Shown here in pieces: positions 960 through 59,627 of a stretch of DNA of 64,000 nt (its first letter is position 1; every line of letters starts with the position of its first letter). The position numbers and the translations under genes were made by a program. The stretch is from Guillardia theta CCMP2712 (lineage: Eukaryota; Protista; Cryptophyta): positions 176,407 through 240,406 of the forward strand of contig NW_005434605.1 in the NCBI RefSeq assembly GCF_000315625.1, given 5' to 3'. The notes under the pieces were generated by a model, which saw only the letters and a list, made by a program, of their open reading frames with translations, did no database searches and had not been told where the DNA came from.

Positions 960-1175
960 GTTTAGTTGGGGATGAGAGGGGACGAGGGCTATTCCAACGG
1001 AAACTTCTACCACCCACCTTACCCCTCCCAACTTTGGAAAGTTAAGGGGTAGGAGAAACAATTCCCATCGAGTTCATTACCCCTTATTTTGATATGTAAT
1101 ACATTGTTATTTCAGTGGTGGGTGATACTACCCCACCCATGAATGACTCCTCAGGGTGTTGATCACCCACCCTCC
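960..1175. promoter_or_regulatory. YACCCC/GGGGTR motif cluster upstream of the EFHC gene
   Basis: ctaccacccacc, tacccctccc, ggggtag, tacccctt, ctaccccaccc, cacccaccc within ~200 bp, mostly C-rich on the sense strand. Confidence 0.5.
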
Positions 1176-5844: not shown

Positions 5845-6220
5845 AAGGGGGGTGGGGTAGTCAGCCTCAGACCGGGTGCTTCAAGAAGAGTTCTCCCTGA
5901 CAGGGGTAGTACATATAGGAAACATTGGATATGGACGGGGTGGTACTGAATATGATCTCGCCCGAGGGGGTGGGTAGATCAATTGGGTCCCGACACAGTA
6001 GTGGTAGTAACGGAGTCTAATAGGGCTGGTGGGGTGGTCAAGGGGGGCAGTACACCAGAGGAGCCAGGGCAACGAAGGGGTGGGGTCATTGCCTGGGATG
6101 GTAGAACACGGACCGGTGAGATGGATGGCGGAAAATGCGGCAGGGTAGGGGTTACCCGTGTGGTGGTCAGGTGTTGTTCAAATTCCAGGGGTGGTCGGAT
6201 TAGAAACGGAGGGGTAGTCA
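5845..6220. promoter_or_regulatory. GGGGTR motif array upstream of the epiplastin gene (G-rich on +, so C-rich on the gene's sense strand)
   Basis: ggggggtggggtag, ggggtagt, ggggtggta, gggggtgggtag, ggggtggt, ggggtggggt, gggtaggggt, ggggtagt. Confidence 0.55.
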
Positions 6221-7287: not shown

Positions 7288-7525
7288 TCCGGAGTCCGGC
7301 GCAGCTGATCCGATCTCTGCCAGGGCAGGCCAATAATCAGGCTCCTCTGCTAATGTAATGCTGCAGCCCCGCCGGAGGCTCAGATGGTCTGAACCCGGGC
7401 CGGACCTCCGGCGCGGCGCTGCCAGCCCGGGCAGGTTAACTGAGTGCCGGAGGCTCAGTGCGGTCGGAGACCCGGCGGAGTCTGCCGGGCCCGCCGGGCC
7501 CTCGGCCTCACTTACTGTGCCGGGA
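7288..7525. promoter_or_regulatory. CCGG-rich GC island immediately upstream of the dynein IC start
   Basis: About 12 CCGG in ~240 bp, followed by a short A/T tract (aaaaatttaaaa...ttttcaaaattt) just before ATG 7587. Confidence 0.5.
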
Positions 7526-7586
7526 AAAATTTAAAATGGATTTTCAAAATTTATGAGCCTGCCTCAGAGTTTACCGATCCTGAGCC

Positions 7587-10049
7587 ATGGCGGGAGAGGA
7601 GCTTGAGAAGAAGCGGCAGAGGCTGGCGGAGCTAAGGAGAGCGAAGGAAGCTCGAGCCCTGCAGCAGGCATCGTCTTCAGCTGCACAGACTGCTGCATCA
7701 ACGTCTCTCCAAGCACTTCTTGCTTCTGTTGGTGCCGTGGGAGAAAGTAGTAAGCCAGCTGAAGGGGAAAGGGGAAGCGACAAGGCAGAGCAGCAAGAAG
7801 AGAGCAGAACTGCAGATCGGGTGGCGGCAGAGGATGAATCACGACCAAGGTCTCGGCGTGAGCATAATCTTGTAATCTCAGAAGCGATCATTGTGGACAT
7901 TCCGGGGAAGATTAGCGAAGCTTACGACAAAACTACTCAAACCGAGCAAGCAGCAGAGCCACAAGCACCTGAGGCGGATGGAGAAAGGAGTAGCGATGCT
8001 CATAAAATAGGGACTGGTACTGAGAGACAGCCGCATAAGGCACAAGAAGACATCAAACCTGCTCAGAACGATGACTCGGTAGACGCTGGGAATCCCGAAG
8101 AGTCTCTTCCCGAACCCTTAGGAGAGGAAGAGTGGAGGAGGCTTGCAATTCAGGACGACTTCCAAAGTTTCTTCTTCAACACCTCCAAGATCCTTGAGCG
8201 TGCTCTTGGACAGCAAGATTATGACATTTTCAAGGACTACACAGCGGACGACATGAGTATTGACTCCAAAGATACTAGAAAGTCGCTCCTAAAGCTGCAA
8301 ACTACATGTTACGATCAGCAAAGGTGTCAGGATCGTCCACTAGCAGCTCTAGAGTGGAGTGTTCACCACCCTGAGCTACTGTTAGCGGCGTATCATGATC
8401 CCGTCGCATCTCACCCATCCGGTGGGACGATCGGGGGCGGCCAGAGTACGCAGAAGGGTCTGGTTTGCATATGGAACATGCGAGCAGGACAGTTCTCACG
8501 TCCAGAGTATGTTCTGCAGTGTGAAAGTACCATCACTGCAGCAGCTGTCCATGCGTTCAGTCCTCACTGCTACATCGGCGGCACTCAGGTCGGGCAGATC
8601 GTCATTTGGGACGTCCGGGCACAGCTCACACCAGTTTCACGTTCTCTCCTCTCAGTTCAGGTAGAGCTGGGATGCAGGATTCCGTACGTTGTCAGCTGAC
8701 CCTCCTCTCAGGGCCATTCGCATCCGATAGTCGGGGTGCGTGCGGTGGGCACGCAGCATGCGCACAGCTTGCTGTCCTTGAGCAGGGACGGCAAGCTGTG
8801 CACTTGGAACCCTTCGAAACTCTCGGAGCCGATGGACCAGATGCCCCTCTCCATCGGGAGAACTTCAAGTGCCGCCCCTGAGGGAGCAGCAGGCGCATGG
8901 AAACTCGACGACCACACGGTCTCCGCCATCTCTTTCTGGGTCTCGAACTCCGACGTGGAGAGGTCACCTGCGAGCTCGCGGTTTCAGGGGCTCACGTAGT
9001 TTGTTTGCAGCTTCATGGTCGGGAGCGAAGATGGGTGTGTATACTTCGGCAGCAGGAAAAGCATCACCGACCGGGGCACCAGCCATGCGAGCACGGAGAG
9101 GAGGAGAGAGTGGATCTCCGGCTCGCTAGCAGGGCATTCTGCTCCGGTGACGGTGAGCTCCAGGCAATTTCCTCCGCCCCTTGTCCTCTGAGATGCTCGG
9201 TGCTACTCGCAGGCTGTGGATTTCCATCCGACTGCTGACGATGCCAAGTCGTCTCTGTCGAACCTGGTCGTCTCGAGCTCCATGGACTACTCCTGCAGGC
9301 TTGTCGCTGCCGATCTCTCCGCAGCTTCTTGACGCCCTCCTGACAGGATCTGGGACCGCAAGTCCGGCAAGGCACTCCTTGTACTGGACGCGGAGAGCTC
9401 GGAGTACATCTACGACGTCAAGTGGTCACCAAGTGATGAAGCCTCTCACTCGTTTCACAATTGACGTCTCCTGCCCCAGCTCAAGCTGGAGTCTTCGCGT
9501 CTGTGGATGGGTCCGGCCTGCTCCAGGTGTGGGATCTCTGCTCGAACCTGGAGGAGCCGCTAGGAGACTTCAACGTCTCGGCCCGCCACTCTGCTTCCGT
9601 GGATGCTTCAGTGGGATCGCAAGATCCTGTTAGAGGCCTGGGGTGTGTAAGTTGGTCAGGTGAGCCCTTCTCAACTGCTTCATAGCCGTCCTCGTCGTCC
9701 TTGTTCTCTCTCCTCTTCTCAATATTGTGTTCTGACCTTGAGCAGGAGACGGAAAGTCGTTAGCATGCGGAGACTCCGTGGGAAGGGTAAGCGATCATGA
9801 TCTCTCCCTGCTCTGCCCTTCTCCTCCTTTTGTTCTTCAGACAAGAGCAACTGAGTTCCTCCGCAGGTGCATATCGTCGGCCTCGGATCTGACATCAGCG
9901 AGTTTAGAACAGATTCGGTGAGATGCTTTCATTTTTCTTTGATCCAACTGAACGTTTCCTCCTCCTCCTCCTCCTCCTCTTCCTCCTTTCAGTCATGGGA
10001 GCAGCTTTACAACTTGCTCGCGAGCTCAACGGAAGACGAAAAACAGTGA
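7587..10049 (+). CDS. DYNC1I: Cytoplasmic dynein-1 intermediate chain (WD40)
   Basis: N-terminal ELEKKRQRLAELRRAKEAR helix, LC8-binding YDKTTQT, roadblock-binding region FFFNTSKILERAL, WD40 repeats (LEWSVHHPELLLAAY, GHSHPI, GHSAPVTAVDFHP, YIYDVKWSP..GVFASVDGSG); about 9 introns. Confidence 0.9.
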
Positions 10050-10074: not shown

Positions 10075-10330
10075 GATTGCCGGCTTCAAAAGCACACAAC
10101 ACGCCGCCGCCGCGCCCGGACCCCCGGTGATCGGACTCTGCCGAGCCGGTTCTACCGCACCGTTCAGTCACTCTCACTGCTGGCCGGCCCGGTGACGGAC
10201 CGTCCGACTCGGAAACTAGAAACTTGACTCACTCAGTCACCGGCAGCCTTTTGGGCCCGTTCCCCGGCGTCCGGGACTGGGACCGCGACTCCGGGCCCCG
10301 GGCCCGGATGGAACCACGTCGCCGGCAGAC
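10075..10330. promoter_or_regulatory. CCGG-rich intergenic island
   Basis: About 12-13 CCGG plus many TCGG/CCGA/TCAG; contains CCGGTGATCGG at 10124-10134. Confidence 0.5.
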
Positions 10331-10734
10331 CAGAGATCATGTCGTGGCGCTGTTCTGGGCGCTGTTCATCGGAGCGCTGTAGGCTCCACTGTAGGCTGAA
10401 CATGCTGAACATGGCGAGATAGTGCTCAGAGTAGTGCTGCTGCAGTGGCCAAGTTCATGTCTGTTAGCCAGGGAAAGTGGAAGAGGAAAGGAAGAGAAGA
10501 CAGAGAAGAGGACGAGGACGAGGAGAGGAGGACGGGAAGAGGAGAGGAAAGAGACCGTGAGAACGAAGAGATAGGGGAAGAGGCTGTGGCGAAGGCAAGG
10601 TCAGGATCAAGTCGAGGAGATAGATGATGGCAGAAGCAAAAGGGTCGTGGTTGAGTGGGCAGACACAACAAGCAAGATGATGAAGCTACGGCAACTCACT
10701 TGATTTTTCTCAGGATGTTTGAGGTAGCAGCAGC

Positions 10735-11912
10735 ATGTCCATGAACATACCTGAACAGAGAGAGTTCTGGACCAAGTTGGTAGTGGCGGAGGTTGATCGG
10801 AGAAAGAAGAAGCTGCAGGAGAGGAATCTGAAGGCTATCCCTCTATCTGAATGTCCCCTTTCAAGCTGCCAAACTTCACTCCCCCCCTGGCTTTACCGCA
10901 TCTCCACCGCTTCTCCTCGGGTGATCGAGTTGCTGTCTTGAGCTCAGAGGACAAAATCCAGCTAGGTGAGATAACTCAGGTCCACGAAGAGGCGACGTGC
11001 GATGTGGAGCTGGACGATGGCGATGTGCTGGCGCGCGTCTCCATGGCGAACATCCGACTCCCCATGCTCGACGACCTTCCTCGCGTCCTCGTCGTCACTG
11101 TTAGGGGAGGAGAGCGAGTCCCGGGGAGGAGCGTGAGGGTTCGCTTCAAGGGGAGCGAGATGTCAGGAGTAATCTTGCAGGAAGAGGAGAAGGGAACGAG
11201 TGTACAGTTGGGGATGGATCATGCTTGGCGATGCTGCAGAGAGAAGAGAGATCTGTCGCTGCATGCGGAGATCGTGACGAGAGGGGAGAGCGACTGGCTG
11301 GTCACGTCGCAGGCAGAGTTTACACATGAGGAGATGAGGAGCGTGCTGGGAGCAGCCGGTGGTTGCCAGGTGAGTTGGACCAAGAGGAGAGGAGAGGCGA
11401 GGAGGGGAGGGGAGAGGAGAGGAGAGGAGAGGAGAGGAGAGGAGAGGAGAGGAGAGGAGAGGAGAGGAGAGGAGAGGAGAGGAGGGGAGCGAGAGGGAGT
11501 GAGAGGAAGGGAGGTAGAATATTAGGAGGAGGGAAAGAGGAGTGGAGGTCAGCGAAGGGGAGCGGTTAAAAAAAGGAGAGAAGGGAGCCGTGGAAAAGGG
11601 TTTGAGAGATGGGTGGGGGAGCAAGGAAGGGAGCCGATAGATTTGCGGATGTTTTTATGCTTTCGGTGAACGAGACTTGACAGATTGATCGAGAGATGGC
11701 AAGAACGGGAGGCAACGAGACAGCGGTCAGTCATGACAAAGCTGTTGTGCTGATCGTTGTTGTGGTTGTGGTTGTGGTTGTGGTAGTCGTGATTGTTGAT
11801 AAGAACGATTTTGTTGTTATTTGTGCTATTGATCATATTGACTTATTACCAGAAGTGCGTCCACTTTGTCTCCATCGTTGTTCGTCCGAACCCGACGTTC
11901 AGCATGTCATAA
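10735..11912 (+). CDS. Hypothetical protein with a possible Tudor/KOW-like SH3 barrel
   Basis: FSSGDRVAVLSSEDKIQLGEITQVHEEATCDVELDDGDVLARVSMANIR resembles a Tudor-type barrel, and a second similar unit follows (VPGRSVRVRFKGSEMSGVI). Donor gtgagt at ~11370 and terminal exon KCVHFVSIVVRPNPTFSMS*. The 5' structure is uncertain. Confidence 0.45.
11384..11483. repeat. (GGAGA)n intronic microsatellite
   Basis: Direct tandem pentamer. Confidence 0.95.
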
Positions 11913-12155: not shown

Positions 12156-16828
<4,673 letters not shown>

Positions 16829-17199: not shown

Positions 17200-17442
17200 C
17201 AGCCGCTGAGTGAGCCTCGGAGTACGCACCGGCAGCCCGGCCCGGCCACCCGGCCCGGGCCGCCGCTGATCGATCTGATCGCCGCCGCCCGGGATTCGGA
17301 GCCTCGCGGCTGACTGATGCTACGATCACTAGTAACTTATTAGTAAGCCTGAAGGCTTAGAAAGGCCCGGGCGGCCGGGTCACTGGCACAGGCCCCCCGG
17401 GCCCGGTCACCCTGGTGATCGGACCCGGTCCGGTCCGATCAA
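17200..17442. promoter_or_regulatory. CCGG-rich island in the divergent promoter (K+ channel / ARM gene)
   Basis: About 12 CCGG in ~205 bp, CTGGTGATCGG at 17412-17422, several TGATC. Confidence 0.5.
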
Positions 17443-19767: not shown

Positions 19768-21790
19768 TCATCCCAGCACGAAGTACTCCCAGAAGTCCTC
19801 CTCCTCCTCGAGCTCCTTTACCACGTGGATAGGCCCGATCGGGATGTTTCCTCCACATGCTAGCTGGAACTCTCGCGCCGCCTTGAGCGCAAACCTGTCG
19901 CATGCGTCGTCGTCGAGGTAGTCGCACTCGTCAAAGTATTGACCGATCTGCGAGACGATAGTCAAGTTCCCTCCCTCTGAGCCTCCTGTCCTACCCAGAT
20001 GAAGACAGCAGGCCCTTGCCCTGGTCCCATCACTTCTCCATAGAGGAGGTAAGCGTGCTCCGACCACAAGTCGTCGGAGTCGAAGAGTTCATACTGTGTC
20101 GAGATCAGATCGCCCGACCGAGCAGGAAAGAGCCTACCTCATCCCACTCGGGGTACTTGAACAACCGCCCGGTCCTCCCTCCATCCCGAGGGGACTCAGG
20201 AGTGAGATCATCCCTGGGCGACATGCCGATGTCCGGGGTGACTACCCCCGTTAACGAAAGAGTTCGACGAGCAGAGAGGTTCGAGCTCGTTGTCCCGTCT
20301 ACCGCTCGCCGTGCTGAGATCCTCCCTGAGCCCAGAGGAGGAGCCCCCATCTGCGCGCGGGACCTGGCAGAGGGCGGCCGTTCCTTGAGCCTAGCTGACC
20401 CCTGTCCCATCAAGGTCCCAATCGCAGCCCTAGCTGACCCGATCCCGCGAGCTGAATGTCTACCCCCTCGCGGTGCGGCCAAGGGAGCATCCGTAGCAAC
20501 GGCTACCGAGGCATCCTGCACTGAATCCTTGTTCTGCGGTTGGAGCTGATGCGCTACCTCCTCATCTGCGGCCTGCTGCTTCAACTCAGCTTCCCTCTGC
20601 TCGGCTTTCGCCTTCCAATCGTCAAGGATCTTCTGGTCAGTGTTGTGCACGTGCGGCCTTGGCAGTTGATCAGAGGAGAATGGTTCAGCCGAGGGCTCGT
20701 CATGGCTTAAAACCCCCTGAACGTCAATAGTCAGTCCACAGCAGTTTGAAAGACAACTTCTCACATTGGAGGTCGTTTGCTCCTCGTTGGGCTGCCCGTT
20801 CATCTCTATGGCGCTGCTTTCTTGAATCGCCGCCGTCTGCTCCTCGTCCGATTCTGCATAGCAAAGCACATATTGACCGTGGAGCCCAGTGCTGAATGCC
20901 TGCTCAATGCGACCTGGAAACGACGCATACCAAGCTGCACCGTTCACTCCCCTTCTTGTCAGCACTCCCCGCAATCCACGTAAATCTTGAAAGTACTGCA
21001 CGTGAAGCCATTTCTTGCTCACATAGACCGAGGCCCCTGGTTTGCACTTGGGATCTCCATCTTTAACTATTTCCCCTGTTTCCTCCTGATCCTCTCCTGC
21101 TGGTAGAATATCTGCATAAGGAATTTCCTGATAACTCTGATCACCATTCTCAAAAGCGTTGGCTCTATCAGGAAATTGAGCAACTACCATTTCCAAGTCA
21201 TGCACGGCACTACTCGGACTTTGCTGAGGTTGATTCTTGCTTACAGAATTGTTGGGTGGTGGCCTGGGAGGTCTTGCGGCAGCTGCATTAGGTACAGATT
21301 TTGCACCGGCTAAAGAAGACTGCGGAATTGGGTGATTGTTCTTCTCCTTGAAGACTGTTCTTGGTGTCGCGCGTGGCTCAAATACCAATGTCTCGGTACC
21401 GTGCTTAAGGTCATCTGTTCGCATGGATCCAACCTCACCAACGACTGAAGGCTCAAGGTTCTGATTTGTCGACATCGAGCTGCCTTTCGGCAATAACGAC
21501 TCCTTGTCAGCAACCCCAGCACTTTCCTGCGCCTTTTCTTCACCCTGGGACTTCGATTCAAGGTTTGACTCAGGTTTTGGCTCAGCTTCTGTAGTATCCT
21601 TCGGAAGTTCCAAATCTTTCTCTACATGGTTGGGGATAGCTGGAGTACCATTGTCTTTGTCATTCGATTCCACCGATTTAGTCGAGTTGACACTTTTGGA
21701 CAATGATCGAGGATCAGCGTTGACTCCCCGGGCAGGGACCTCCTCCTCTTCGGGAACCCCCCCACACAGCGAAGAACAACAGCCGAACAT
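19768..21790 (-). CDS. Hypothetical protein with an N-terminal Cys cluster and a C-terminal gelsolin-like domain
   Basis: Long exon 21790-20141, then spliced LFKYPEWDE|YELFDSDDLWSEHAYLL...AVFIW|IGQ...IHVVKELEEEEDFWEYFVLG*, which matches the gelsolin-repeat pattern (F-x-x-DDL...Y-L-L...VFIWIG...V-x-E-x-x-E-x-x-x-FW). Confidence 0.65.
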
Positions 21791-22629
21791 TGAAACGAAT
21801 TCTTGATCTAGGTTTTCACGCCATTCTCTGGCTCAACTCTGCATCAGGAGCCACGCACTGTGACACTTTGGAGCGAGGCGTTGTTCGTGAGGATCTCCGA
21901 TTGGAATGCATCAAAGAAAATAATCTCGCTCTGCACAGAGGTCAGACAGATCGTCAGAGTGCATCCAACAAACTTACCTGCTTGCCGCATGCCTTCCCCG
22001 CAAAGGGAACGATGACCCATCTGCCTGAGAAAAGACGAATTACACAGGTGTGAAAGGGGCCATAATAGGCGATCCAAAGGTCACTTCGGGTGTAAGAAGT
22101 CTATAGAGACTCGTTGCAGAACAAGCATTCGAAATGGAGAGCAGTCTACCCATGAAAATGATGGGAGAAATACACATTCACAACAATCAGCGAAGGGCAA
22201 CAAGAGCTGAAAAACATACACGTGTACAGCGGCAAAAGATGCAGATACATGGGAGAATATCAGGGGGTTTGATGTAAGAAAAACGAATCGCCTATTGCAG
22301 CAAGGGGCAGGCCTGAGGTGCGCAGCATGGCAAAGAGCAGTACAGCATGCATGGATCAAGTGTGGAGCCTTGAGCAGGAGCGGGAAGATGCGGCAGGCAT
22401 CATAAACCCCTGACATGGAGAGGAACAAGAGATTTCATGGGGCTACAGCGAACATCTACGGAGGAGGATCGCAGGAAGCAGGAGCAAGGATACAGAACAG
22501 GAGCAGAGCAGGGAGCATAGAGGACAGAGCATGGAACAAGGAAGGCTGTTACAGCATGGAGGAAGCCGGGACATGCCGAGAATGACCGACACTACCATGC
22601 CAGTCCTCGGCCATCGCATCGGCAGGGTG

Positions 22630-23445
22630 AGGACATAATCGGGGGGTAGGGGTACAAGGATGATGACTAACAATGGGGTACTTCGTTTAGGAATAGGGGG
22701 TACTCCCTGGTGGAAAGGGGTTGTACTAGTATCTAAAATTGAATACGGGTGGTAGCAGCACTCAACAGGGTGATAAGATTCCGAAATGAATTTTTGACGG
22801 GGTGGGGTGTAGAGATACCCCTTCTTGAATAGCAATTTAATATGGAAATACACCGGTATGATTCGAGGTATGGGGGATTGGCAAGCACAGGGTGGGTATT
22901 CAAACTCTTTGGTAGGGTGATTGTCGGACTACGGCTTCCGGACAACAGGACCGGTGGGGTAAAGAAATCAGGGGTATATTCAACCAAAGGACAAATGTTT
23001 CATATTACTATGGGGGTACTTTTGGCTACTATGACAGGGTGAGTGTGACCAAGATAGGGTGGGGGTACACAAAGATGAGGTTGGGGTAATCGGGGGTCAA
23101 TTTGAAAAACAAGGGTTTGCTATAGTCTTCAGGGTACGAAAGTGAGGAAAAAATGGGGGTGGGGGTAAGGACCCATGGTACGACTTATTATCACTACCCC
23201 AGCATATGTCTGAATAACAAAGGGGCGAGTCATGGTGGGGTGATTTCAGTACGGGTAGCTTTTCATCAGTAATTTGTACTCTTCGGTTCTAGAGGGGGTG
23301 GGGTGATAAATGCAGCTCGATACCCCCCCTGGACATTTACTTCGTACCCTACCACGGGCGACTTGTACCACCCCACCCATGAGCCGCGAATACCCCACCA
23401 ATTACCCCTCCTTTTCTCTTCTCCAACCACCCCACCCGTCGGGGA
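22630..23445. promoter_or_regulatory. Large GGGGTR/YACCCC array in a divergent promoter, with a polarity switch at ~23310-23320
   Basis: More than 20 GGGT/GGGGT motifs on + up to 23305, then ataccccc, gtaccaccccaccc, ataccccacc, ttacccc, caccccaccc. Confidence 0.6.
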
Positions 23446-23604
23446 CTCACTTTACCTTTGCGGAAGAGCAGCCCTTGCTCAGGGTCAGGAGGAGGCGGAG
23501 GAAGGGAAGGGAAGGGATGGGGAAGCGAGTAGAGGAGGAGGGAGGACAGGGAGGGGAGGAGAAAGGAGATGATTTGATCAGTTCTGGCTTGAAAAGCGTG
23601 CAGC

Positions 23605-26600
23605 ATGCGCCTTCTGCTCATTCCCACTAGTGCGAAAACCAGTGATCGACCCAGTATGGACCGACATCCATCTTCACTGCATGCCATGCTTCCAATGGAA
23701 GGGACAAGACGCCCTCCTCCACGCACAAGAGCAGGTACAGCTTCAAAGCCGACAGCTAGAACTGCCGCCAGGCATGATGTCCCGCAACATCACTTCGACT
23801 GGAGCATGCGAAGGATGTTCTGGAGTCTCGTGCTGATCCAATCGATCACCTTGGGGATATTTGTTTCATTCATGTGCAAGACGATGAGCACAGGGAGCAT
23901 AAGCCCCTTGCCGCACACCATCATGGATGATATCAGAGAACGAGAGCTCAAGTACTTCAAGACGAAGGAAGGGATCCCTGCAGAACCTGCTGCGGTTTCG
24001 CCTTCGCATCGTCCTGCTGGAAAGACAGCATGGGTGTCAAGATACCTGTATCCTGAGCTCTGGGATGACCTTCCTGAAGTGAAGAGGCTCCCTATTGTGA
24101 AGATGCCTCCTCAAGGCGATGCCCAGAGCGCTCGTCTGCAGGTAGAGGTCCAGGGTCCTAGCAAGCCAACAGGGCAGGCAGGAGATCCTGGTAGGCCTGG
24201 AGGCATGGAGGGGTCAACAAGTCAGGAAGGCTCTGCCAGGTCATCTCAGGTGCAGGGCCTGAGGGCTGAACAGCCGGCTGCTCTTACGGCTCTGAGCATG
24301 AGCGCCTCTCCGCAGCTAGAGTGCTCCCCGTTGAAGGAAGGTTCACCCACAGCCATGTCCCTTGACCTCACTGGGGATCTTCCGGAGCAAATGCTGCAGT
24401 ACCTCTTCGCTCGGACATGGGCGGCAGTGAGGGGCGTCGGGGTGATCAAGAAGTCCTCTACTGCCCACGACCATCTGAGGCTCTCCTACCCTGGAGTAGG
24501 ATGGAGCCAGTCGTCAGGTGTTCACCCCCCAATGAAGGTGGACAGCTCGGTTTGTGGAGGGGTGTACAAGAGGAACTACCTGTATCACTACAAGAGCAGG
24601 AACCTTGCCAAGTGCCTGTTCTCGGTGCCGGCCAACTTTGCAATCCCCAACGAGGTGGTCGTGTACTTTGAAGGAAGGAACTCGGTCAGTTTCGACGCCA
24701 TGAGGGTGCAGGCCTCCCGGGATTTTGACGTGGAGCTGATCAAGAGGGTAAGCCCCGACGTGATCTACTTCAAGTCGGCAATTGAGCATGTCATGCGCAC
24801 TCTTAATACAGGCGCGATGATCTCCATCGTCTGCGAGCCAAAGTTCCTGATGCACCCGACTGTCCTGCAGCTGAAGCAGCTCTACAACTCCAGGGTGGTG
24901 CACGTGAACCCCTTGAATGACATGAACCGCGCTGTTCATGCGGCGGCCTTCATCGGCAGCTTTGGAGATCTCTCTTGGATGAGCGCCTTCCTCACAGGAG
25001 CCAAGCAGATTCATCTTCCTTACTGGTCGGACCTTGACGAGAATGCTGGAGGGAAAATTTCAGAAACTTTGGGGACTTGGCCGAAACTCTTCATCCACGA
25101 CGACGAGCGGTTGTGTTACTGGGACTTGAATCAGCCAACTTCATGCTCTCCTGCTCGACAGGTGCTGGCAGCTAGAACTCCGTTTGCAACTGCCGTCCTC
25201 AACAGGTCAGACGACTGCATTTTCAGACAGCAGCAAGATGTCATCGCCGCTAGTGGCACGCAGAAGGATTCGGCAGAGAAGACTTCTTCAGGAGTCGCAA
25301 TCTCAGGAGGGGGGTTGAGCACTGTAAGTGGGGCGGGGAACACTGTCACTGCCAGCTCAGGCTCAAGGCTAAATCCGATTGGAAGCATACAAGATGCAGC
25401 GGAAGCCGCAATTGCAGCTGCCGCTGGCAGGGGGGGGGGAGCAGGAGCAGGAGCAGGAGGAGGACAAAACTTTGTTATGAACCATGGGCAAGGACTTGGT
25501 TTCCAGCAGACAGGAGGAAATGTGATGAGGGCAAGTGCAGGTCAAGAATCCAATCGAGATGCAGCAAAGGGTTTGCAACAAGGGCCAGTCCACGGGGTGC
25601 AGGACTTGGTGATAGGAAATGGTGTAAATGGAGCAGTACAACTAGGGTTAGGCACAGGTGCAGGAGCCGCTGCTATGCCGAGGGTACAGAACTTGGCCAT
25701 CGTGGGGGAAGCAGGAGCAGGAGCAGTACAGCAAGGAGCGGTACCGGGGGCAGCAGCCGCTGCTATGCAGCAAGGGGTGGCGCAAGGGGTGGCGCAAGGG
25801 GTACAGAACTTGGCTATGGGAGGGGGAGCAGTACAGCTTGGCGGAGGAGCAGGCGCAGTACAGCAAGGAGCAGGAGCAGTACAGCAAGGAGCAGGAGCAG
25901 GAGTAGAAAGGGCTGCGATGCAGCAAGGGGTGGCGCAAGGGGTACAGAACTTGGCTATGGGAGGGGGAGCAGTACAGCTTGGCGGAGGAGCAGGAGCAGG
26001 AGCAGGAGCAGTACAGCAAGGAGCAGGAGCAGGAGCAGGAGGGGCTGCGATGCAGCAAGGGGTGGCGCAAGGGGTACAGAACTTGGCTATGGGAGGGGGA
26101 GCAGTACAGCTTGGCGGAGGAGCAGGAGCAGGAGCAGGAGCAGTACAGCAAGGAGCAGGAGCAGTACAGCAAGGAGCAGGAGCAGGAGCAGTACAGCAAG
26201 GAGCAGGAGCAGGAGCAGGAGGGGCTGCGATGCAGCAAGCGGTGGCGCAAGGGGTACAGAACTTGGCTATGGGAGGGGGAGCAGTACAGCTTGGCGGAGG
26301 AGCAGGAGCAGGAGCAGGAGCGGTACCAGGAGCAGGAGCAGGAGCAGGAGGAGCTGCTACGATGCGGCTAGGGATGGACCAGCCGATACTGAACTTGATT
26401 GGGAGAGGCTTTCCTCAGCGCCAACGAATGGTGATTGAGAAGGAGAGGAGGATGAGGCGCGGGACTGAAACTTGATGTCAGGGGCAAGAGTCCTGCGTGA
26501 CTCAGAAAGGAAACGTCCTTCTCCTTCAGAATGTCATGCTCGATTCGAAGCCGCTGCAGGAGAACGTTATCTTCACTTCGAGGTCTGTCTCGGCCTGCCA

Positions 26601-30475: not shown

Positions 30476-31050
30476 CCGGCATGGAGCCCTGGGCTGTGGC
30501 CGTTGGCGGTTTCAGGACGTAACGATAAACTGCAGACCCGGTCGGTTATAACAGTACGTGGTCCGTCTGACCGCCCGCCGGGCCAGCCGCCGGGCCGGGC
30601 CCCCGACTGACGGGCCACCCGGGCGGAGCCGAGCACTGAGAAGTCGCCTCCGCCTCCGCCGGACTCCCGTCCTCCCCCCACCCCCCACCTCTAGGCTGGA
30701 AGTTGAAATTAGGGGTAGGGGTGGACAACGGGAGATTTCCCCAGGGACGTGTAAAGTCCGATAAGTGACTCTTCAGATGGACGGATCGTCTTTAGAAGGA
30801 CCCATCCCATTGATCACCCCTACCCCCATAAAAATCTCAACCACCCCTCCTCAATCCATTTCAATGTGACTTCTTATCCCGTTTTCCCGTTGCCTACCCC
30901 ACTTCATTCTACCCCCTACCCCCTATTTGTAGTACCCCTCGTTGTCATTCCCGAAGTTGAAGTTTACGGCAAATTGATTTTAAATAGATAAACGACCACC
31001 CCCATAATCCCGAACGACCACCCCACCCTATATGGCCCTACCCTCGTAGG
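30476..31050. promoter_or_regulatory. Divergent promoter: CCGG island (30476-30665) followed by a YACCCC array (30670-31050)
   Basis: 7 CCGG, then cacccctaccccc, ccacccct, ctacccc (several), gtacccc, ccaccccc, ccaccccaccc oriented toward the Ca2+ channel gene. Confidence 0.55.
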
Positions 31051-39329: not shown

Positions 39330-39717
39330 GGTCGCTCGCGCCGCCGCCGCTTTCGCACTACCCCCACCCTTCAGTCCTGCCACTACCGCCTTGTTGACCC
39401 CACCCCCTTGAACTACCATGGGGAACAGCCATACATCCCGTAGGGTGGTCTTCATGGACAACCCCTACCCCGTCTGCCTAAATTTCTTCACCCCTCGTTG
39501 AAGTCATCAAAGTACCCCTGCATTGACCCGGATTCCATATTTCTGGTCTTCCATCTTACTTGGTACACTTTTTCACCACCCCTTGGTTCTCATTTAGCAC
39601 TCTTGAAGGGGGTAGGACAGTCATTTGGAGTACAAGGAGTGGGTGCTAGGATGGGAAACAATGGGTCCTAGAAAGTGTAGGGTGGTGGTTTCCCGCGCGA
39701 AAGTTTGTGGCATCGCA

Positions 39718-41146
39718 ATGCTCAAATACTGCGAAGTTTGCACGAGCAAGACAGCAGAAGGAGACGGCTACTTCTCCACATGCGGACACATTTTCTGTCA
39801 AAAGGTTATTTACATGTTTATCTTTCTTTTTTGTGTTGTTGTCTTCTCTTGTTTTCTTTCAAGGCAACAAGGCGGGGATACCCACTTGAAACTGCATCTT
39901 TATCATACCGCGCAATTATTGACATCTTGCTGCTCAGTGCCACAAAGATGCTGGAACTTGTCCCCAGTGTGGAGTCCAGGAAGGATTTCAAGTAGTACCC
40001 TTCCAAAGGATTCCGCAACACCTAGCATTCATGTTTCTTGAAGACTTGGGCCTATCGAATCTGAAGCAGGCTGTGCAGGTTGACTTGCGTAGAGTTTCTT
40101 TCAATGAAAATGATTTCGAGGGTGCTTAGTTCCAGATCGCTCACTATCAAAGAGTTGCTTCCAGAGCTAGGGAGGAAAGAGACGCTGCGGTTCAATTTGC
40201 AGAAAGCTGTAAACGTTCCTTCACAACAAATCAAAGGTTCTTGTTCTCGACTGCACTTCAGTAATTTACGGAGTCCTTCAGTTGTCAGCCTCACTCAGAA
40301 ATCTCATCGAAGATGTACTTGAGATCTACTAATGTAGAGTGACCTGACAATTCATAGGCCTTTGGTTCCACATTCCGGTCTCTCTGCACAACCACCTAAG
40401 CTGCTTTTGCGTTCCAATGAATGTGTGGGAAGGAGCCAAGCATCTTTGAGTAATTTGATATCATTCGTTGTCATTACTGATTCAAAGCCAGGTACTTCTC
40501 AAAGCGCTTTGAATAATGACATCTCCGTACGGGCTTTGCAGGCTGACTTTCAATGTGCCGTTACCCCAAAATCATTACCTCGCGACCAGACCGCGATATC
40601 AAGAGATCAGCAAAACAGCAGATTGAATTCAAGACCTCCTTCTCCCATCGCATCACGCCCAGTTTCTAAACAAGCATCTCCTTCCTTTTCCACGGTCAAA
40701 AATTCCAAACCATCGCCGAATTCAATGAGCAGATATCAAACACCAGCCCTAGCAACCCCAAAGTTCAATGATAGTGAAGCACTAAACCGTTCTGTATCTG
40801 TTGCACAGCGATTTGGCCTGGGAAATAAGACATTGGTGAATTGTTCACAATTTTGCTCTTCAAGACTTACACTAAGTATACTACGTTGCAGGTTTCCTTC
40901 CCACCAAAACAAAGTGCAATACAGACTCCTGGGAATCAGCGGTTACAAGTCACGCCTTCGACACAATCGCTGCCAAGGCCTTCGTTCACTCCCCGTAGTG
41001 CACTCATTTCACCCAACACAACATTGATAGCAAATAGAGGACTCTTGCAGCCTTCAGGACTTGGAAAATCAGGCTTGGCGCAGAACTGCTCTTCGAATTC
41101 ACAAACGGCTCTCTTTGCGAATAAGAAACCTCGATTATTGCCTTGA
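39718..41146 (+). CDS. RNF212: RNF212/Zip3-like RING protein (meiotic crossover SUMO/ubiquitin E3 ligase family)
   Basis: N-terminal MLKYCEVC...YFSTCGHIFCQK|CHKDAGTCPQC RING, then IPQHLAFMF...KQAVQ|FQIAHYQR coiled coil with the family FQ motif, and an S/P/T-rich disordered tail. Confidence 0.65.
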
Positions 41147-41520
41147 AAAACGGTATGAAAACTCTGCTGTGATAAAAATTGCATGAAACAAAAATCAATC
41201 GGATGTTCATTACATCGTTAAAGAATGCGTTGTCAGTCCAGACTTCTACATCTGATATTTGGAGAAGTTGTTAAGAGTTTCCTTCTTGATGAAGAAGCCT
41301 CGATCAACAACTGGGATTTACAACAAGTGCGAGACCTTGAGGATTGCTATTCACAATTCTCTCTCGATCCTGTGCTGGAATTGAGAAACAGCCAGCGCTC
41401 TGCTTGCTTCATCCCCCGCCCTAGAAAGCAGCCACGCCACGAAAGCCAACAATACGGCCAAAGGCTGTGGGGTTACCTGAGGAGTGGATGGGTATGTCTT
41501 CTAGGGCGAGGGAACCAACG

Positions 41521-44151
41521 TCAATGGCCGATTTGTTGGTGGACCCCTCCTCTGTTCTGTTGCTGACCACCCCATGCTATCCCCCGAGGCAGATCTGATT
41601 CCGAATTTCCGTTCCACATTGGTTGAGGTCTTTCTCCGCTCCCTTGCCTCGTATCACCATCTTCATATTCACCCTTCCCCCCAGCAGCAAACAGAGCCTC
41701 TTTCGGCATCTCGTCAGCAAGGGCGTTCCTCGCTACAAGTTCCGCCAGCTTGAGAGCGACATGAGGCTGTACGTCATGGGCATCAAACAGGCATTCCCCA
41801 TAGTAATTTGGTGCTGTTGTGTTGTCCTTGGGTCCCTTGCGGAAGATTCTGATCTCAGGGGAGTGAGGAGGTGGAGGCAGCTTGATATCATCATAACAGA
41901 GGCCATGCATCTCGTCTGCCTCACAGTCTACGATGGCAGCCTTGGCCAGCCCAGCGACACCAGCACCAAGTCTGAGCAAGTTGGTGATGGCAGTGCGACA
42001 GGGCCCACAGAACACCCCGTCTGTGAAGACAACAAACCAGAGGTCCAGCGATCCCAGGACGTTATCCCTGAAGTCCGAAGAAGTCTTGAACGTTGGCACG
42101 TCAGTCTGCGAGTAGAGCCACTTCCACTCCTTGGCCACCTGCAGCGCAGAACAAGTCACAAGAAGGTACTGGAGGTGCGAGCATGCGCACCGCACGAGCC
42201 CACGAGATGATGCTGTCAGGGTCCTTAGACTGCGATTGCGAGTATATCTGTTGAGTTCCTCTCTCAGCAGATCCGATCAACATGAGGGAGGGATAGGATC
42301 CAATGCTGAACCATTCGCCACAGATCCCTTTCTCATTCACACAATTGACAGCTCCCACCTGTCCTCAAATGCGTCAGTCTGGATCCTGCGTATGCCCATG
42401 ACCAAGTCACCTCGATATCATCGTTCTCCAAGGCCTTGGCAACGTTCTTGTAGGTGCTCACGAAATGACCGCAGGCTGTACACCAAGGAGCATAGAACTC
42501 AACGAGCCAGATGGCATCTCCGATGACTCGTCTACAGAAAGAGCGCATTAAAGATGACTTTCCTGCTGCTTCTTTGCTCACCTGGGCCAGAGACTTTCGG
42601 TCAATTTCGAGATGAGGGTTTCTCCGTTGTAGAAGTCATTTGACGAGCCCTTCTTTCCGTACATCTCCCATTCCCAGAAGGTGTTGAACTGAGCCTTCTC
42701 AAAAGCATTCATGAGATCGCGGGCATGCTGTCAGGAGGCACTTCACCTGGTCTTGTCCCCCGAGATCGTCGAAGGCAGCCCTCTTGTCAGGATCCCCGAG
42801 AATTTCATAGGCCGCGACCTTCACAGGGACAAGATAAGGCGAGCGTCTCTAGGCAGATCATCCAGCAGCAAGGCTTCATCACCACATCCATGAAAGCTTT
42901 CTGAGCTGCCTCCTTGAGCCTCCCGTCGGAAATCTTGTCCGGATGGAACTGAAGGCTCAACCTGTCGGTTCTCTCAGCGAATTTCATCGGCAAACACGAG
43001 GGAACCTTCGGTACGCCTTGCGAATATCCGTCATTTGGGAGTCCTTCGGAAGCTTGAGGACTCCGTATGGATCTTTTTGTCCATCTCCAAAGTTTGCAGC
43101 TCGACGTTTGATCTCCTCCTCGTCTACAGCTTCTTTCTTGTCTACCGGCAGCACATGTGAGCAGAGTAACCGTAAACCCTTTGACCTCACCCTCATCGAC
43201 ATTCTGTCCCCTCAGTCTCTCTAGCTCCGACTGCTGTCGCTCAGCCAGACGTTGCTCAGCTCTGCAACGCTTCATGACGACTTGCCAAGTGGGGGGAGGC
43301 TGGCAGACCTGTGCTTGGCCTCCTGCAAGTTTTCTTTCTCCAGTCGGGAGGCCGCCTGCCTCTCCTCCATGGCGAGTAATTCTTCTCTCCGCCGCGCTTC
43401 GCGTTTCTTCGAGATCTGCCAGTTGAACGTCTCAGTGAGGACCCTTGTTACTTCATCTTCTCTACCTCGTCGCGGTGGGGGCAGCTCTTGACAACTCCAG
43501 CATTTCCTATGTGATCGTTCTCACCAGCACACATCCAAGCCTTGTCTTCCACGCATCTTCAGATCGCCAAGTGTCAATAGAGTAGGCGACCGCTGCAGAG
43601 CATGCACAAAACCTCCTTGATCCGATGCACCATGCGCAATTCGAAGCAAGGCAAGAATCGCATCCACGATGAGCTCCACATGGCAAGTTGGGATCGGCTT
43701 GGATGGTCTGAAATAATTTGAAGGAGACATTAGCTGATTGCAGTCAAGATTTCTTTCTTTCTCTCTTCTCAGTCATTCTCCTCACAAAGGCCAATCCCCG
43801 ATCCTCCCTCTTTTTCACCTGAGCTGCTCCATTCCTACACTGAGCGACAGCTCCATTTCCCGGCCAAGCCCAAGATCTGCCGATAAATTTCACCAAGAGG
43901 AGATATCTCTACTCCTCCTCCAACCCTCACTTCAGGCGATATGCTTCCTGTACATCCTTGCACGTTTGGCAGCACGGTATCTCTGCACTCTCTGCTCCGT
44001 AGCAGCTACCGCAAGCCAGAAGGTCTGATCTTCCTTGAGAGTCTTCACACGTCTCTCCTCTGCTCTTGTCGCATGTCTCAGAGGATGCCGATACCCCTAG
44101 CGCCCCCGCCATCAGAGCTACTCGGATCAGCCATGCAAACTTCCCCAGCAT
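41521..44151 (-). CDS. Secretory DnaJ plus two thioredoxin domains (ERdj5/DNAJC10-like) with N-terminal Erv46/ERGIC3-type Cys module and PSI-like domain
   Basis: Signal peptide MLGKFAWLIRVALMAGALGVSAS; J domain DPYGVLKLP...IRKAYRRLSLQFHPDK...AYEILGDPDKRAAFD; Trx WLVEFYAPWCTAC and WFVVFTDGVFCGPC; about 12 short introns. Confidence 0.85.
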
Positions 44152-44189: not shown

Positions 44190-45145
44190 AATATCCGCCG
44201 GGTGGTGGTGTTCAGGTGGTTCTTGAGTGTGACCGGCGGGTGCCGGCATCGGGCCCGGGGGCCCGGCTGACTCTTTTGGTACTCGATTGAAGGGGCGGGC
44301 CCGGTGATCGGGGCCTGCCGCCGCCCGCGGATTGAAGTAAGAAATAGAGAGGGGGTACTGCTGTGATTCTATTGCGAGGGTGGGGTGATTTTCACCCGTA
44401 GTAAATCAAATCAAATGGGGGGTGATAAAGATGTCATGTGGTAGAATAGGGGGTAGGGTAATCACCCCCCTTTCGTCACTTCCTAAGAGGTCTCAAGCAA
44501 AGGACCCAAACGAGATGTACCCTCCAATTACCTACCACTACCCCCTAAATGTCTCATCTTTCTCAGAAAAGGACAATTGTGATTGGGTATAGCAATATTT
44601 ACTCTTGAAGTATCGAGCAAAAGTACATGATGGACAGCCCAAGAAAGAATGTCGAACCCCCTACCTTCTAAAATTACAACCCTACCCCAGCAAAATCGTT
44701 CAGATGGCTCCTTTACCCCCACCCCCGCCCCACGTGATCTTCGCTTATTACTACCCTCGACGATCATGTCCTTCCCTGTCGATTACCACCCCTACCCACT
44801 ATAAATCAGCCTACCCCCTCTTTGGGCTGTTGATGACGTCTACGCCTCCTTTCCCTCCCTTATCGTATGACCCCACCAACTCATTACCCCCAATCAATTG
44901 TCTTAGACCCCCCTGAATCGGGTTCCTCTCCCCTTGCCAACAAAACGTTGGGGTCATAATCGACTGCTTCATCTCTTCTGCTGTTCGTACAGCAAATGAC
45001 CCCGACCGGTATCTGACTACCCCACCCTTCTACCTATGACCCGTTCAGTCGTAAGGTAAATTGAACACGTTGGTATACCACCCCTCTACCAATCATTGAT
45101 TACCACCCCCACCCATCGTTTTAAAATACCCCCACCCTACCTGGT
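44190..45145. promoter_or_regulatory. Divergent promoter: CCGG island (44197-44311) and GGGGTR/YACCCC array switching polarity at ~44460
   Basis: CCGGTGATCGG at 44301; G-rich motifs 44350-44460 face the minus gene; about 20 C-rich motifs 44463-45140 face MDH. Confidence 0.6.
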
Positions 45146-45158
45146 TTCAACCATCGCA

Positions 45159-47204
45159 ATGCTCTCCTCCCTCAGAGCCACCGCTTCCCGCTCCCTCACT
45201 GTAAGACGCCCTGCATCCTCCTCCTCCTCCTCGACCAGCACCACCATCACCACCACCACCTGCTTTGTTCCTTAAGTGTTCGCCCTCCTTTTGCTTCTCC
45301 TCTTCCTCCTTCGAAATCTCGCATGGCGATCCTCTGTTAGATGTTTACTTTGTTCACAGCGCAGCCTTGCTTCCCAGCAGCAGCGAGGATTCAAGTGCAG
45401 GTTAGACCTTAGTCTTCAGATCCCCCAGATTCTGATCCCATGACCCAGCGTCCTCGGAGCTGCCGGTGGCATTGGACAGCCCCTCTCCCTCCTCCTCAAG
45501 CTCAACCCCCGCGTTACCGAGCTCACCTGCTACGATGTTGCTCCTGTCACTCCTGGTTGGCTAGTATCGTGCTCTTACTCGCACAAACGACTGACGATGG
45601 CATGAAGGTGTTGCGGCCGATCTTTCCCACTGCTCCTCCAACTCCAAGTGCACTGGATACTCCGGAGAGGACCTCAAGAAGGCCCTCGATGGCTGCCAGG
45701 CATGCGTAAGCGGCGGCGCGCTCCTTCCTTGACTTGGTCTTCAGGTTGTTGTCATCCCTGCCGGTGTTCCCCGCAAGCCCGGCATGACTCGTGATGATCT
45801 CTTCAACACCAACGGTGCCTCCTCCACCAAGCGCCATATAATAGCTGCTGGTGCTGACTTCTCCACCAGCAAGCATCGTCAAGAACTTGGTTGCTGCTTG
45901 CGCCGAGGCCTGCCCCAAGGCCTGCCTCTTGATCATCTCCAACCCTGTCAACTCCACTGTTCCCATCGCTTCCGAGGTCCGTGGGAGGATGATGAGGAGG
46001 TAGGGAGGAGAACCAAGAGCTCACTGTATGTTGCAGGTGTTGAAGAGCAAGGGCGTCTACGATCCCAAGAAGCTCTTTGGTGTCACCACCCTTGACGTTG
46101 TCCGTGCTCGCACCTTCATCGCTCAGGCCAAGGGCCTCGACGTCAACAAGGTGATGCCTCTTCCTTCCACTACCCTCTTGGCTGTTCAACTCCATGTGCT
46201 CGTTAACTCTCCTCTCTCCATCTCCCCTCGATCTTTCCCCTCTCCTCTCCTCTCCTCTGCTTCTCACCTACTTCAGGTCACCATCCCGGTCATTGGAGGA
46301 CACGCTGGTACCACCATCGTTCCCCTCATCTCGCGTGCCGAGCCCAAGGTGACCAGACCACCTGCGTTCTTGTCCCCTCTTGACGCTGTTGAAGGTTTCC
46401 TTCCCCGACGCTGAGCGTGATGCTTTGACCAACCGCATCATGTTCGGAGGAGACGAAGTTCTCAAGGTAAGGGGCGTTTTCCCCTCCCCCTTCTCTTCCT
46501 CACGGGCCTCCCCCCTCCTCACCCTCAGGGCCTCCTCCTGCTCTCCCTCAGGGCTTCCCCCTCTTCCTCCGGCCCCCCCCCCCCCCCCACCCCCCCCTTT
46601 CCTCTTGTTCCATTTTTTTGCTGTGTTTCCTTTTTTCATTGTTGGAGCGATTCTTCGAATCCGATCTCAATTCTTCGCTTGAGCGGCCGAGGGCTCACAT
46701 GGTGGCAGGCCAAGGCTGGAGGAGGATCCGCCACCCTCTCCATGGCCTTCGCTGGAGCTGAGTTCGCCGACAAGTGCGTCTCGTGCTCTTGTGCGATCGT
46801 TGGCGTGACGTTGGGTCAGGGTCATGGCTGCCCTCGATGGCAAGACCGGCATCACTGAGTGCACCTTCGTCGAGTCCACCGTTACCTCTAGTGAGTTTCC
46901 CGACCCCTCGCGTTCTAAGGAGGTGACCTTGATGGCAGGCAAGTTCTTCTCCTCCCCTGTCACCCTCGGCAAGAACGGAGTTGAGCAGATCCACGGGTGA
47001 GGACGGAGAGGGAGGAGGGTGAGAGGGCGAGGTGAGAGGCTGCTGCAGATACGGAGAGGTCAACGCCTACGAGCAGAAGCTCATCAACGACATGTTGCCC
47101 GACCTCACCGCTCAGGTTCCTCCAGCTCCTCGTGTGCCGCCGGATCTCTTGACATGCGCTTCCAGGTCGAGAAGGGCATCAAGTGGGCGCAGGAGAACAA
47201 GTAA
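45159..47204 (+). CDS. MDH2: Mitochondrial malate dehydrogenase
   Basis: Presequence [14 protein letters not shown]; [91 protein letters not shown]. Confidence 0.97.
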
Positions 47205-48760: not shown

Positions 48761-49176
48761 TTTGGCCTGATGGGTTTATAACCCTCACCCACTACCCCCT
48801 GTTTGCTATGAAAAAGTACCCCCACGCCTTTTACAAGTTTCTCCAGTCGACAATGCATTTGTGAATGTAGGATCTATGTTCAGCTCGTCGAAGATGCCCA
48901 GCAGAACAGTTTGAGTGACATGACAACGAAGCTGGTGAGGTTGAGATCAACACCTTCAGCATTGCGAGGTGAGAAAGATCACAGCTCTTAACTTTGCTTG
49001 AATGTTTTACTTTAATACAACAACGTGATCTTCGAACTACAATGCGCCTACGGCAGGTACATGGCAGGACAAACAGCTTCCTGCGCCCTTCATCCTCTAC
49101 ATGCACGTGGCTAGACGGATCGCATCCTCAGAAAACCTGTAAAGAATCGAATCCCCATGTCTCCTCCTCAGCTCCT

Positions 49177-51229: not shown

Positions 51230-51660
51230 CTCACCACCCTACCTTGATTATATAGTGGAGGTAGGCTATACAGGGGTTGGTAGTGTTGGGGCATAAGCCG
51301 AAGGGTAGGGTCACATCCCCCACCTCAGATATTCCACTAAAATGTACCCCTTTACTTCAGATTCCTGACCACCCCCACCTGCTCCCTTCGGGACTCTTGC
51401 AAGCCTTGGAAGGGTACATGGTAGGTGGTACATCCAAAAGGTGGGAGTGAGATAGGGTAATTGGGGGGTAGTTGTTTCAGGACAGGGGTAGAGGAACAAC
51501 TCAGGGGGTGGGGGGTGATGAAAACCTTGACTTTTACCAGTATTGGATGGTAACATTGGGGGTAAACAGTGAATGAAAGGGGGTGAGAAATGTTCCTAGA
51601 TATTTGAACGGGTGGGGTAGTAAGCGAAACTTGGTCCTTGGAATAGGAGGTGGGGTGATG
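51230..51660. promoter_or_regulatory. GGGGTR array upstream of MTHFR (mostly G-rich on +)
   Basis: gggtagggt, ggggggtag, ggggtag, gggggtgggggtga, gggggtaa, gggggtga, gggtggggtag, ggggtga. Confidence 0.55.
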
Positions 51661-52296
51661 CTTTTTGGAGCCGGCAGGGAGTTGTGATGTGGCGAAGATG
51701 TGGAGGAGATTTTCAAATGCAATCTAATAATTTCAAAACTCTTCTCAACATTTCACACAGAGAATTCAAATATACCCACTATTTTTAGGCTCCATGGAGC
51801 CCTAAGAATTCGGTCCTAGAGGGTTCGGTCGGGTGTACCATTTCTATGAACTGCGGTCCTTGGAAGCTCGTAGAATGTGGTACTAGGATACCTAGGACCA
51901 CCTTTACACCGGTATCATCTCCTTAAGAATTAAACTTTGAAGTTGTCGCAGTCAAACTTTGAGAATTCGCTCCCTGATATGAAACTTACAAAACTTTGAA
52001 ACTTCAGCCTGGTTGGCCCGCAGACAACTTTTCAGTTTGCCTCGGAATGGTCCGCCGAGGCCGCTCGTTCTGCTGCCGCGCCGGCGGTCACGACAGTCGG
52101 GGCGTGGCCAGGCCCTTCGAGCCTCATGGCATGGGAGTGCGCCTCGGGGGCGGCCCCTGACTGGGCGGCCGGCGGTACGCGGACTCGGTGACGGTTTCAA
52201 ATTTACTTAGTTTCATCAAACCTTCGAAGTACCAGCCACACACACATGCAACATGTTTATATGTACATCACCTGTGAAGAATCGGTTCCCAATTGG

Positions 52297-58728: not shown

Positions 58729-59314
58729 ACGCTCACTTCGGGCTTGCAACGTCCGAGAAACTACGACTCCCGAGCTCGTTGAGAGTTTCTTCCCCTTGAA
58801 CTCAGCCTCTTGCATCTTCCACCACCCTCCTCCTCTGTTCTTCCTCCAATCTTCACCAAACGCGCACCCAGGGCCTTACACAATTTGACCAGCGCTGGAC
58901 CCGAGTCTAGAGTTAACAACCAATAGCAGCGGCCGAGTGTGACTGCTTGAGCTCTTGTTGACTCCTACCACCTTGCTCATCATCACACTCTCAGTTGTCC
59001 TTCTCCTTCTCCGCCGCCTCTTTCTTCTCCTGCACCTTCACAATGGACGAATTTCATTCTGCGCCGCCCTTCCCGCCATGGCACCATTTGTCTACTACCC
59101 ACCCTTTGGTCATATTAAGTTTTTAGAGACCCCTGTAGTTTATTTCTACAAGTACCCCACCCCTCATGACAAAGTAACTCAACCATCGTTTACCCTGACA
59201 AATTCGAATTTATGTACCCCGTACCCCTACTTATACTACCCCCACCTCCTCTCCCTTCATCGGACTGTCTCCACCCGACCGAAAATCTCTCCTTCGCACA
59301 GTTGTACACTACTG

Positions 59315-59436
<122 letters not shown>

Positions 59437-59627
59437 TTAACCTTGTACTGAGCCCGTTCTCCTCCACTCTCGGTTCTTCTGCATCTCCTAATTGTTCTCA
59501 CGCTCCTCTGCGAAAGTTTTTTGATGCCGAGGCGATGATGAAACAGGCAAAGTGGCGCAGACGAGGAGGACGAGTCAGGAGCAGCTGGGGCAAGCGCGAG
59601 AGTAGAAGCGATAGAATGTTTATCCTC

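Follow-up and report, generated by a model that had tools for sequence, protein, structure and literature searches.

What is the short G-rich word that crowds the spacers between genes in the cryptophyte Guillardia theta, and does it act as a promoter signal? The question is raised by a 64-kb stretch of the genome (positions 176407-240406 of its contig; hereafter the window), in which GGGGT(A/G), or YACCCC when read on the opposite strand, is gathered into dense, oriented arrays, the focal one lying between two divergent genes at 22.6-23.4 kb. With moderate confidence, the arrays are read here as promoter elements, namely homotypic clusters of up to about 25 putative sites for one sequence-specific DNA-binding factor. 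Throughout, an array or cluster denotes at least four GGGGT/ACCCC copies with neighbours no more than 150 bp apart. The window was set beside an independent 200-kb sample of contig C1 (C1:100001-300000), 18 loci around Ras-family exons, and the whole assembly of 87.1 Mb in 669 contigs, a genome with spliced genes, short GT..AG introns and a TTTAGGG telomere repeat at scaffold ends.

The position of the focal array relative to transcription is given by contigs from four public RNA runs placed on 20201-26000, the single locus mapped in this way. A 4444-nt contig from one run covers 20201-22628 with two introns (20716-20763 and 21931-21977) spliced out and stops at 22628; these introns read CT..AC on the plus strand, and the contig therefore represents a minus-strand mRNA with its 5' end at about 22628. 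A second contig begins at 23460 and continues through an open reading frame (ORF) at 23605-26472, delineating a plus-strand gene at 23460-26472 that encodes 956 amino acids without a Pfam match. Two further runs repeat the same exons around the spacer, and RNA depth over 22723-23304 is zero in all four runs. The array, extending from 22643 to 23436, lies between the transcript ends at 22628 and 23460 and therefore fills the untranscribed divergent spacer.

Structurally, the focal array consists of two opposed arms. In the G-rich arm (22643-23305, plus strand), G(4-6)T(A/G) occurs about 18 times with two opposite-polarity copies interspersed; this arm starts 15 bp from the transcript end of the minus-strand gene. 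The C-rich arm (23321-23436, with the G-rich form on the minus strand) contributes five YACCCC copies on the plus strand and ends about 25 bp short of the 5' end of the plus-strand transcript, so that YACCCC stands on the own sense strand of both genes. Spliced-leader trans-splicing occurs in Guillardia theta (PMC5619915). No unaligned spliced-leader tails were reported at the focal transcript ends, and an element of the 5' untranslated region or outron was rejected on this ground together with the absence of the array from the transcript contigs. The 5' leader of the minus-strand gene itself seems to be about 800 nt long (21790-22628) and to contain the intron at 21931-21977 and short upstream ORFs, if a 561-amino-acid ORF from 21790 is its main coding region.

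The clustering of the motif is far beyond chance. Copies are present at all nine intervals listed by a sequence-only reading of the window, and these intervals, amounting to 5.6% of the sequence, hold 87 of the 137 GGGGTR/YACCCC hexamers (binomial p about 1e-72), a density of 24.3 per kb (18-44 per kb individually) versus 0.83 per kb outside. Under the definition above, nine clusters are found in the window, eight of them coinciding with those intervals; the remaining interval, at 48780, has three copies only, and an additional cluster at 25774-26071, overlooked in that reading, is a coding tandem repeat within the 23605-26472 ORF and unrelated to the promoter arrays. Copies lying in clusters number 106 in the window versus 12.6 in simulations preserving composition within 1-kb blocks, and 169 versus 42.9 in the C1 sample. 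A longer form of the motif, GGTGGGGT, occurs 19 times in the window versus 1.65 expected from dinucleotide shuffles, with all 19 occurrences inside arrays, and genome-wide GGTGGGGTAG is found 2235 times versus 655 for its reversed control. The coding tandem repeat, spanning 25430-26400, is built from units of about 130-150 bp that are 78-88% identical and each contain GGGGT, thereby mimicking an array; two A>G differences between RNA contigs and DNA at 25907 and 25909 are probably repeat variants.

Within the arrays, the motif has a defined form. Aligned copies yield the consensus G(3-6)-T-(A/G)-(G)-(T), plus a G three bases upstream that appears because doublets such as GGGTGGGGT are frequent; GGGGTA(G/T) is the commonest form, and GGGGTG makes up about one third of copies. 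The base following a G-run in the arrays is T in 81% of cases for runs of at least three G and in 89% for runs of at least four; for G-runs that are not in clusters the share is 26%. This preference makes the element a specific word and not mere G-richness. Copy-to-copy distances comprise doublets at 5-6 bp and a wide maximum covering 20-32 bp, whereas distances of 8-19 bp are depleted; the median distance from one G-run to the next is 25-26 bp, and copy spacing has no helical (10.5-bp) periodicity. This arrangement looks like the spacing of protein footprints.

The sequence between the copies is not shared. The spacers had been described as unrelated and the arrays as no satellite, which Tandem Repeats Finder and repeat comparisons bear out: the program detects no tandem repeat in the focal array, only (GGAAG)4 outside it, and internal repeats of that array are limited to motif-sized matches. 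No array-to-array similarity was found in the window or in 320 kb of sampled sequence, and the focal array matches nothing in the 87-Mb genome besides itself. Every array is unique sequence, and the motif therefore recurs independently at each locus. A satellite or tandem repeat was rejected for lack of a head-to-tail unit, and a remnant of a transposon or miniature inverted-repeat transposable element because no sequence is shared between loci beyond the motif. A telomere-derived or telo-box repeat was likewise rejected, the telomere being TTTAGGG and the motif G(3-6)T(A/G). Searches of the window against Rfam (at gathering score) and for tRNAs gave no matches.

The association with gene starts extends beyond the focal spacer. 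Among 14 Ras-family genes of certain strand, for which flanks of 1.5 kb were examined, 7 are preceded by an array and none is followed by one. Where the C-rich form is on the sense strand at these loci, the array starts at a distance of 600-760 bp from the first coding exon; where the G-rich form is, the distance always exceeds 1 kb, as would be expected if such arrays belonged to a head-to-head neighbour. A profile of sequence upstream of long ORFs in the independent 200 kb gives a weak motif excess only, and a Pfam search of ORFs flanking arrays returned few matches. The earlier view that all arrays lie upstream of gene starts, with none at seven convergent junctions, is well supported as regards upstream placement, but the junctions are not motif-free: they contain four copies in 2.2 kb, three of them at 41146-41521, and, given how short they are, absence from them would be weakly informative.

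Comparison with relatives was made through MTHFR, one of the array-bearing genes of the window. A query with its long exon retrieved seven metagenomic loci whose amino-acid identity is 62-75%, and five of them share the single long exon; no GGGGT/ACCCC arrays occur in up to 4 kb upstream of these seven; instead, (GA)n tracts lie upstream of two and an AT-rich region upstream of one. These array-less relatives offer a weak indication that the element may be lineage-specific or quickly turned over, and the literature searched contained no published account of a GGGGT(A/G) motif or of any cryptophyte promoter element. Collectively, the focal transcript ends, the genes fixed by Pfam, the Ras genes, the genome-wide enrichment and the array-less MTHFR relatives support the proposal of the sequence-only reading that this is a promoter-associated, lineage-specific element.

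The arrays are also strongly strand-coherent. Of the pairs of neighbouring copies, 82 of 97 (window) and 130 of 148 (C1) lie on the same strand, and genome-wide, pairs with a 10-40 bp gap number 38028 on the same strand, a ratio of 4.2:1 to opposite-strand pairs (9156). The C-rich form had been claimed to occupy the sense strand of each downstream gene; this is true of the locus mapped by RNA and of the majority of window loci, but is no more than a tendency in the independent 200 kb. Arms backed by RNA or homology in the window agree in six cases and disagree in one. A sliding coding-strand track, noisy though correct for 9 of 10 known genes, places eight arrays in agreement and four in disagreement before correction, two of those four being window calls refuted by RNA or homology. 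Near the ATG of long ORFs, a polarity bias is present in the window (13 versus 3) but absent from C1 (14 versus 11).

Other strand markers added little to this picture. Genome-wide, ACCCC is followed by the splice-site word GTRAGW 4309 times and GGGGT 4717 times, GTRAGW itself having no strand bias in known genes (18 versus 20); an intron regular expression failed to discriminate strands, and the length of the first-ATG ORF does not differ between the two sides of each array (16 versus 14). Self-trained codon and 3-periodic Markov callers were dropped, since iteration drifted into low-complexity purine tracts and the ion-channel gene was missed, and an ORF-based frame classifier, right on 32 of 32 long ORFs, was dropped after putting the intron-rich malate dehydrogenase (MDH) gene on the wrong strand. 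The polarity rule is thus a tendency with real exceptions, while the upstream location is well supported.

Four arrays whose neighbouring genes are fixed by homology obey the polarity rule. A small array at 1021-1137 (minus orientation; three C-rich and one G-rich copies on the plus strand) lies upstream of a plus-strand DM10 gene (ATG about 1221; DM10 domain at 1538-2416, Pfam). The array at 30680-31027 (minus orientation), with ten C-rich and two G-rich copies and its C-rich part at 30816-31027, precedes a plus-strand ion-channel gene (ATG 31135; Ion_trans, 6.9e-41). A second divergent array at 44352-45132, with copies in both orientations, places 4-5 G-rich copies beside a minus-strand gene on the left, followed by about 16 C-rich copies (arm 44464-45132) before the MDH gene, which is assigned to the plus strand by Ldh_1_C and has its ATG at 45161 and a mitochondrial-type leader. 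The strand switch inside the 22.6-23.4 kb and 44.3-45.1 kb spacers is as previously described, with lone opposite-polarity copies interspersed. The last motif copy lies 29 bp before the MDH ATG (45132-45161), implying a very short leader, a trans-spliced mRNA or a transcription start inside the array. Finally, the array at 51273-51656 (plus orientation; nine G-rich and two C-rich copies) is upstream of minus-strand MTHFR (8e-88; N-terminal exon and ATG about 51213), in a tandem, single-promoter gap into which the neighbour on the right, also a minus-strand gene, turns its 3' end.

Three further arrays fit the rule by ORFs and the coding-strand track only. That at 5849-6215 (plus orientation) has 11 G-rich copies about 40 bp from the putative start of a minus-strand gene (ATG about 5806), whose strand is taken from an ORF and the track. 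At 39360-39613 (minus orientation), eight C-rich copies are followed by one G-rich copy; the track places a plus-strand gene on the right, and there is a weak RING match on the plus strand. The array at 59129-59242 (minus orientation) has six C-rich copies. The track suggests that its surroundings are divergent and that the right-hand gene is on the plus strand; the array may serve that gene and would then not be the exception that had been claimed. The sequence-only reading had named two polarity exceptions, of which the one at 48780 is borne out by homology and the one at 59090 is questioned by the coding track. Hexanucleotide repeats of (CTGCTC)n and its complement at 59300-59440 and 59930-60085 adjoin this array and match a portion of the 25.9-kb repeat. 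An inverted duplication in C1 (198460-198804 and 199351-199698) carries identical outward-reading ORFs of 115 amino acids separated by a 550-bp spacer with a five-copy C-rich array. A run of 128 N at 12979-13106 of the window is an assembly gap.

How, then, might such arrays work? The site would be G(3-6)-T-(A/G), often extended by G-T and often doubled, in clusters that appear to occupy the non-transcribed spacer before many genes and to reach within about 15-30 bp of the transcript start. A protein would read the motif, many occupied sites would keep the region open, and occupancy would set, or help to set, the position and direction of transcription; the terminal copy may have a positioning role, approximately where a TATA box would sit. 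Recognition of the word by a protein is favoured because of the strict T, the doublets, the 20-bp minimum spacing, the fit to transcript ends and the independent recurrence of the motif. For the reader of the motif, a zinc-finger factor of the KLF/Sp or STRE-like kind, as had been suggested, is a guess.

Several observations weigh against this promoter reading. Contig ends give only approximate start sites, and transcript-end evidence comes from one locus. Many window promoters are without an array, some having GC-rich CCGGGCC islands instead. The spacers on the G-rich strand are poor in C (12-17%), which discrete binding sites alone do not account for, and the observed/expected ratio of GpC is 0.33 in arrays versus 0.90 in the whole window; CpG is depleted in arrays as well as GpC. 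Genome-wide, opposite-strand pairs in the G-to-C order number 3935 versus 5221 in the C-to-G order, so that the flip within divergent promoters, true of some loci, is not a law: both switch types occur, and G-to-C is not the preferred one. The polarity exceptions add to this, comprising two C1 arrays (near 84.3 kb and 126.8 kb of the sample) and, in the window, the three-copy cluster at 48786-48825 (minus orientation), which is C-rich on the plus strand directly upstream of a minus-strand PAP_fibrillin gene (PF04755, 1.3e-08) and is a true exception. A 13-copy G-rich array of C1 that breaks the polarity rule has on its left, at C1:183900-184000, a perfect hairpin-type inverted repeat with arms of about 14 nt in apparently non-coding sequence. 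An unannotated minus-strand transcript at C1:183900-184000 would bring that array back under the rule.

The GC islands may be a second type of promoter element. They occur at 7391-7511, 10262-10307, 17218-17408, 30557-30634, 44227-44332 and 52133-52184, have at least 85% GC, and contain words of the CCGGGCC/GGGCCCGG type with several palindromes of 6-8 nt. The first three lie just upstream of array-less plus-strand ORFs (7584-8696, 10436-11513 and 17564 onward, respectively), and those at 30557-30634 and 44227-44332 adjoin GGGGT arrays, on the flank that faces the minus-strand gene. A similar island precedes an array in the 184-kb region of C1 (L010:4250-4283).

In a different explanation, the arrays are not a selected code and would have been left behind by a DNA process that acts locally and asymmetrically on the two strands. 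Such a process would repeatedly insert or rewrite short pieces of unique sequence, each bounded by a G-run and T, in nucleosome-free promoter DNA, with error-prone repair, template switching and short-patch insertion as candidates, and the arrays would mark promoters merely because promoter DNA is exposed. The unique spacers, mostly 20-32 bp long, fit such a process, as does a skew that takes in the spacers as well as the motif (the low C and GpC given above). Strand-coordinated clusters are typical of single-strand-specific processes, and the copies are clustered in just this way; the array-less MTHFR relatives would reflect fast turnover. Simple decay of GpC to GpT was rejected: the base after a G-run inside arrays is T in 81%, A in 14% and C in 5%, with GGGGA depleted as strongly as GGGGC. 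That equality counts against the process, as do the absence of any spacer copy elsewhere in the genome or in the 320 kb sampled, by which copying of the segments from another place is discounted, and the coincidence of array ends with transcript ends, which suggests function. We regard this explanation as unlikely, though worth carrying.

A structural explanation dispenses with a site-specific protein. R-loops, long-loop or intermolecular G-quadruplexes, or i-motifs would stop divergent transcription or exclude nucleosomes, and with a G-rich template strand upstream of a gene, any upstream antisense transcript would be G-rich. The one-stranded G-runs, the strong GC skew across 200-800 bp and a polarity that mostly follows the orientation of the neighbouring gene are in keeping with this. 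So is a 3-4 times higher density in arrays of G-quadruplex patterns when loops of up to 12 are allowed (2.2-3.0 per kb versus 0.6-0.8). The G-quadruplex-forming elements that had been proposed are nevertheless not supported: the focal 816-bp array is devoid of canonical patterns, also at a loop limit of 12, and patterns with loops up to 7 are at background density (0.28 per kb in window arrays versus 0.33 elsewhere). Considering also the median G-run distance and a strict T that such structures do not need, we think it improbable that structure alone accounts for the arrays. That they mark replication origins, in analogy to the oriented G-rich repeated elements upstream of animal initiation sites and overlapping promoters since origins often lie there, would suit the oriented G-rich elements in intergenic DNA and the presence of both types of skew switch, but is very improbable given the tight fit to transcript ends, which points to transcription, and about one non-coding array per 12 kb over 264 kb (8 in the window, 14 in the C1 200 kb), far denser than usual origins.

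Returning to the promoter reading, known systems offer partial likenesses. Clusters of Sp/KLF GC-boxes and GT-boxes (CACCC-boxes) in TATA-less vertebrate promoters likewise place multiple G-rich GGGGTGGGG-like sites just upstream of starts, often bidirectionally, and the GGGGTG share of about one third and the common GGGTGGGGT doublets strengthen the resemblance. The Guillardia arrays differ in that GGGGTA(G/T) is not an Sp/KLF consensus, in being strand-coherent over hundreds of base pairs, and in being depleted of CpG and GpC, not enriched. Sites for yeast Reb1, Rap1 and Abf1 and for Drosophila GAF are likewise short motifs that recur across many promoters, commonly as multiple copies with one orientation preferred. 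Such general regulatory factor and GAF sites are credited with keeping promoters free of nucleosomes and setting direction, yet they number 1-5, whereas the Guillardia arrays have up to 25 copies over 0.8 kb, filling the whole spacer. The plant telo-box (AAACCCTA) and site II (TGGGCY) are similarly C-rich on the sense strand near the start and accompanied by a second GGGCC-type element, here the CCGGGCC islands; the Guillardia telomere is TTTAGGG, the motif is not derived from it, and it has far more copies than telo-boxes do. With G-quadruplex promoter motifs and the G-rich repeated elements of origins, the arrays have in common oriented G-runs in intergenic DNA, but the Guillardia G-runs are too far apart for canonical quadruplexes, and a T is needed after the run.

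A bolder form of the promoter reading, which we hold to be possible but doubtful, is a Guillardia-specific architecture in which the oriented G4T(A/G) array replaces the usual core-promoter motifs. In it, the terminal copy would place the start and arm polarity would give direction, two opposed arms making two promoters with no other recognisable element.

For the biology of the organism, the abundant, oriented GGGGTAGT-type motif is a handle for finding the responsible factor, and the arrays provide a simple sequence cue for better annotation of gene starts in the Guillardia genome. They could help to define promoters for genetic tools in cryptophytes, and they form a system for asking how the direction of transcription is set in a compact genome rich in head-to-head genes.
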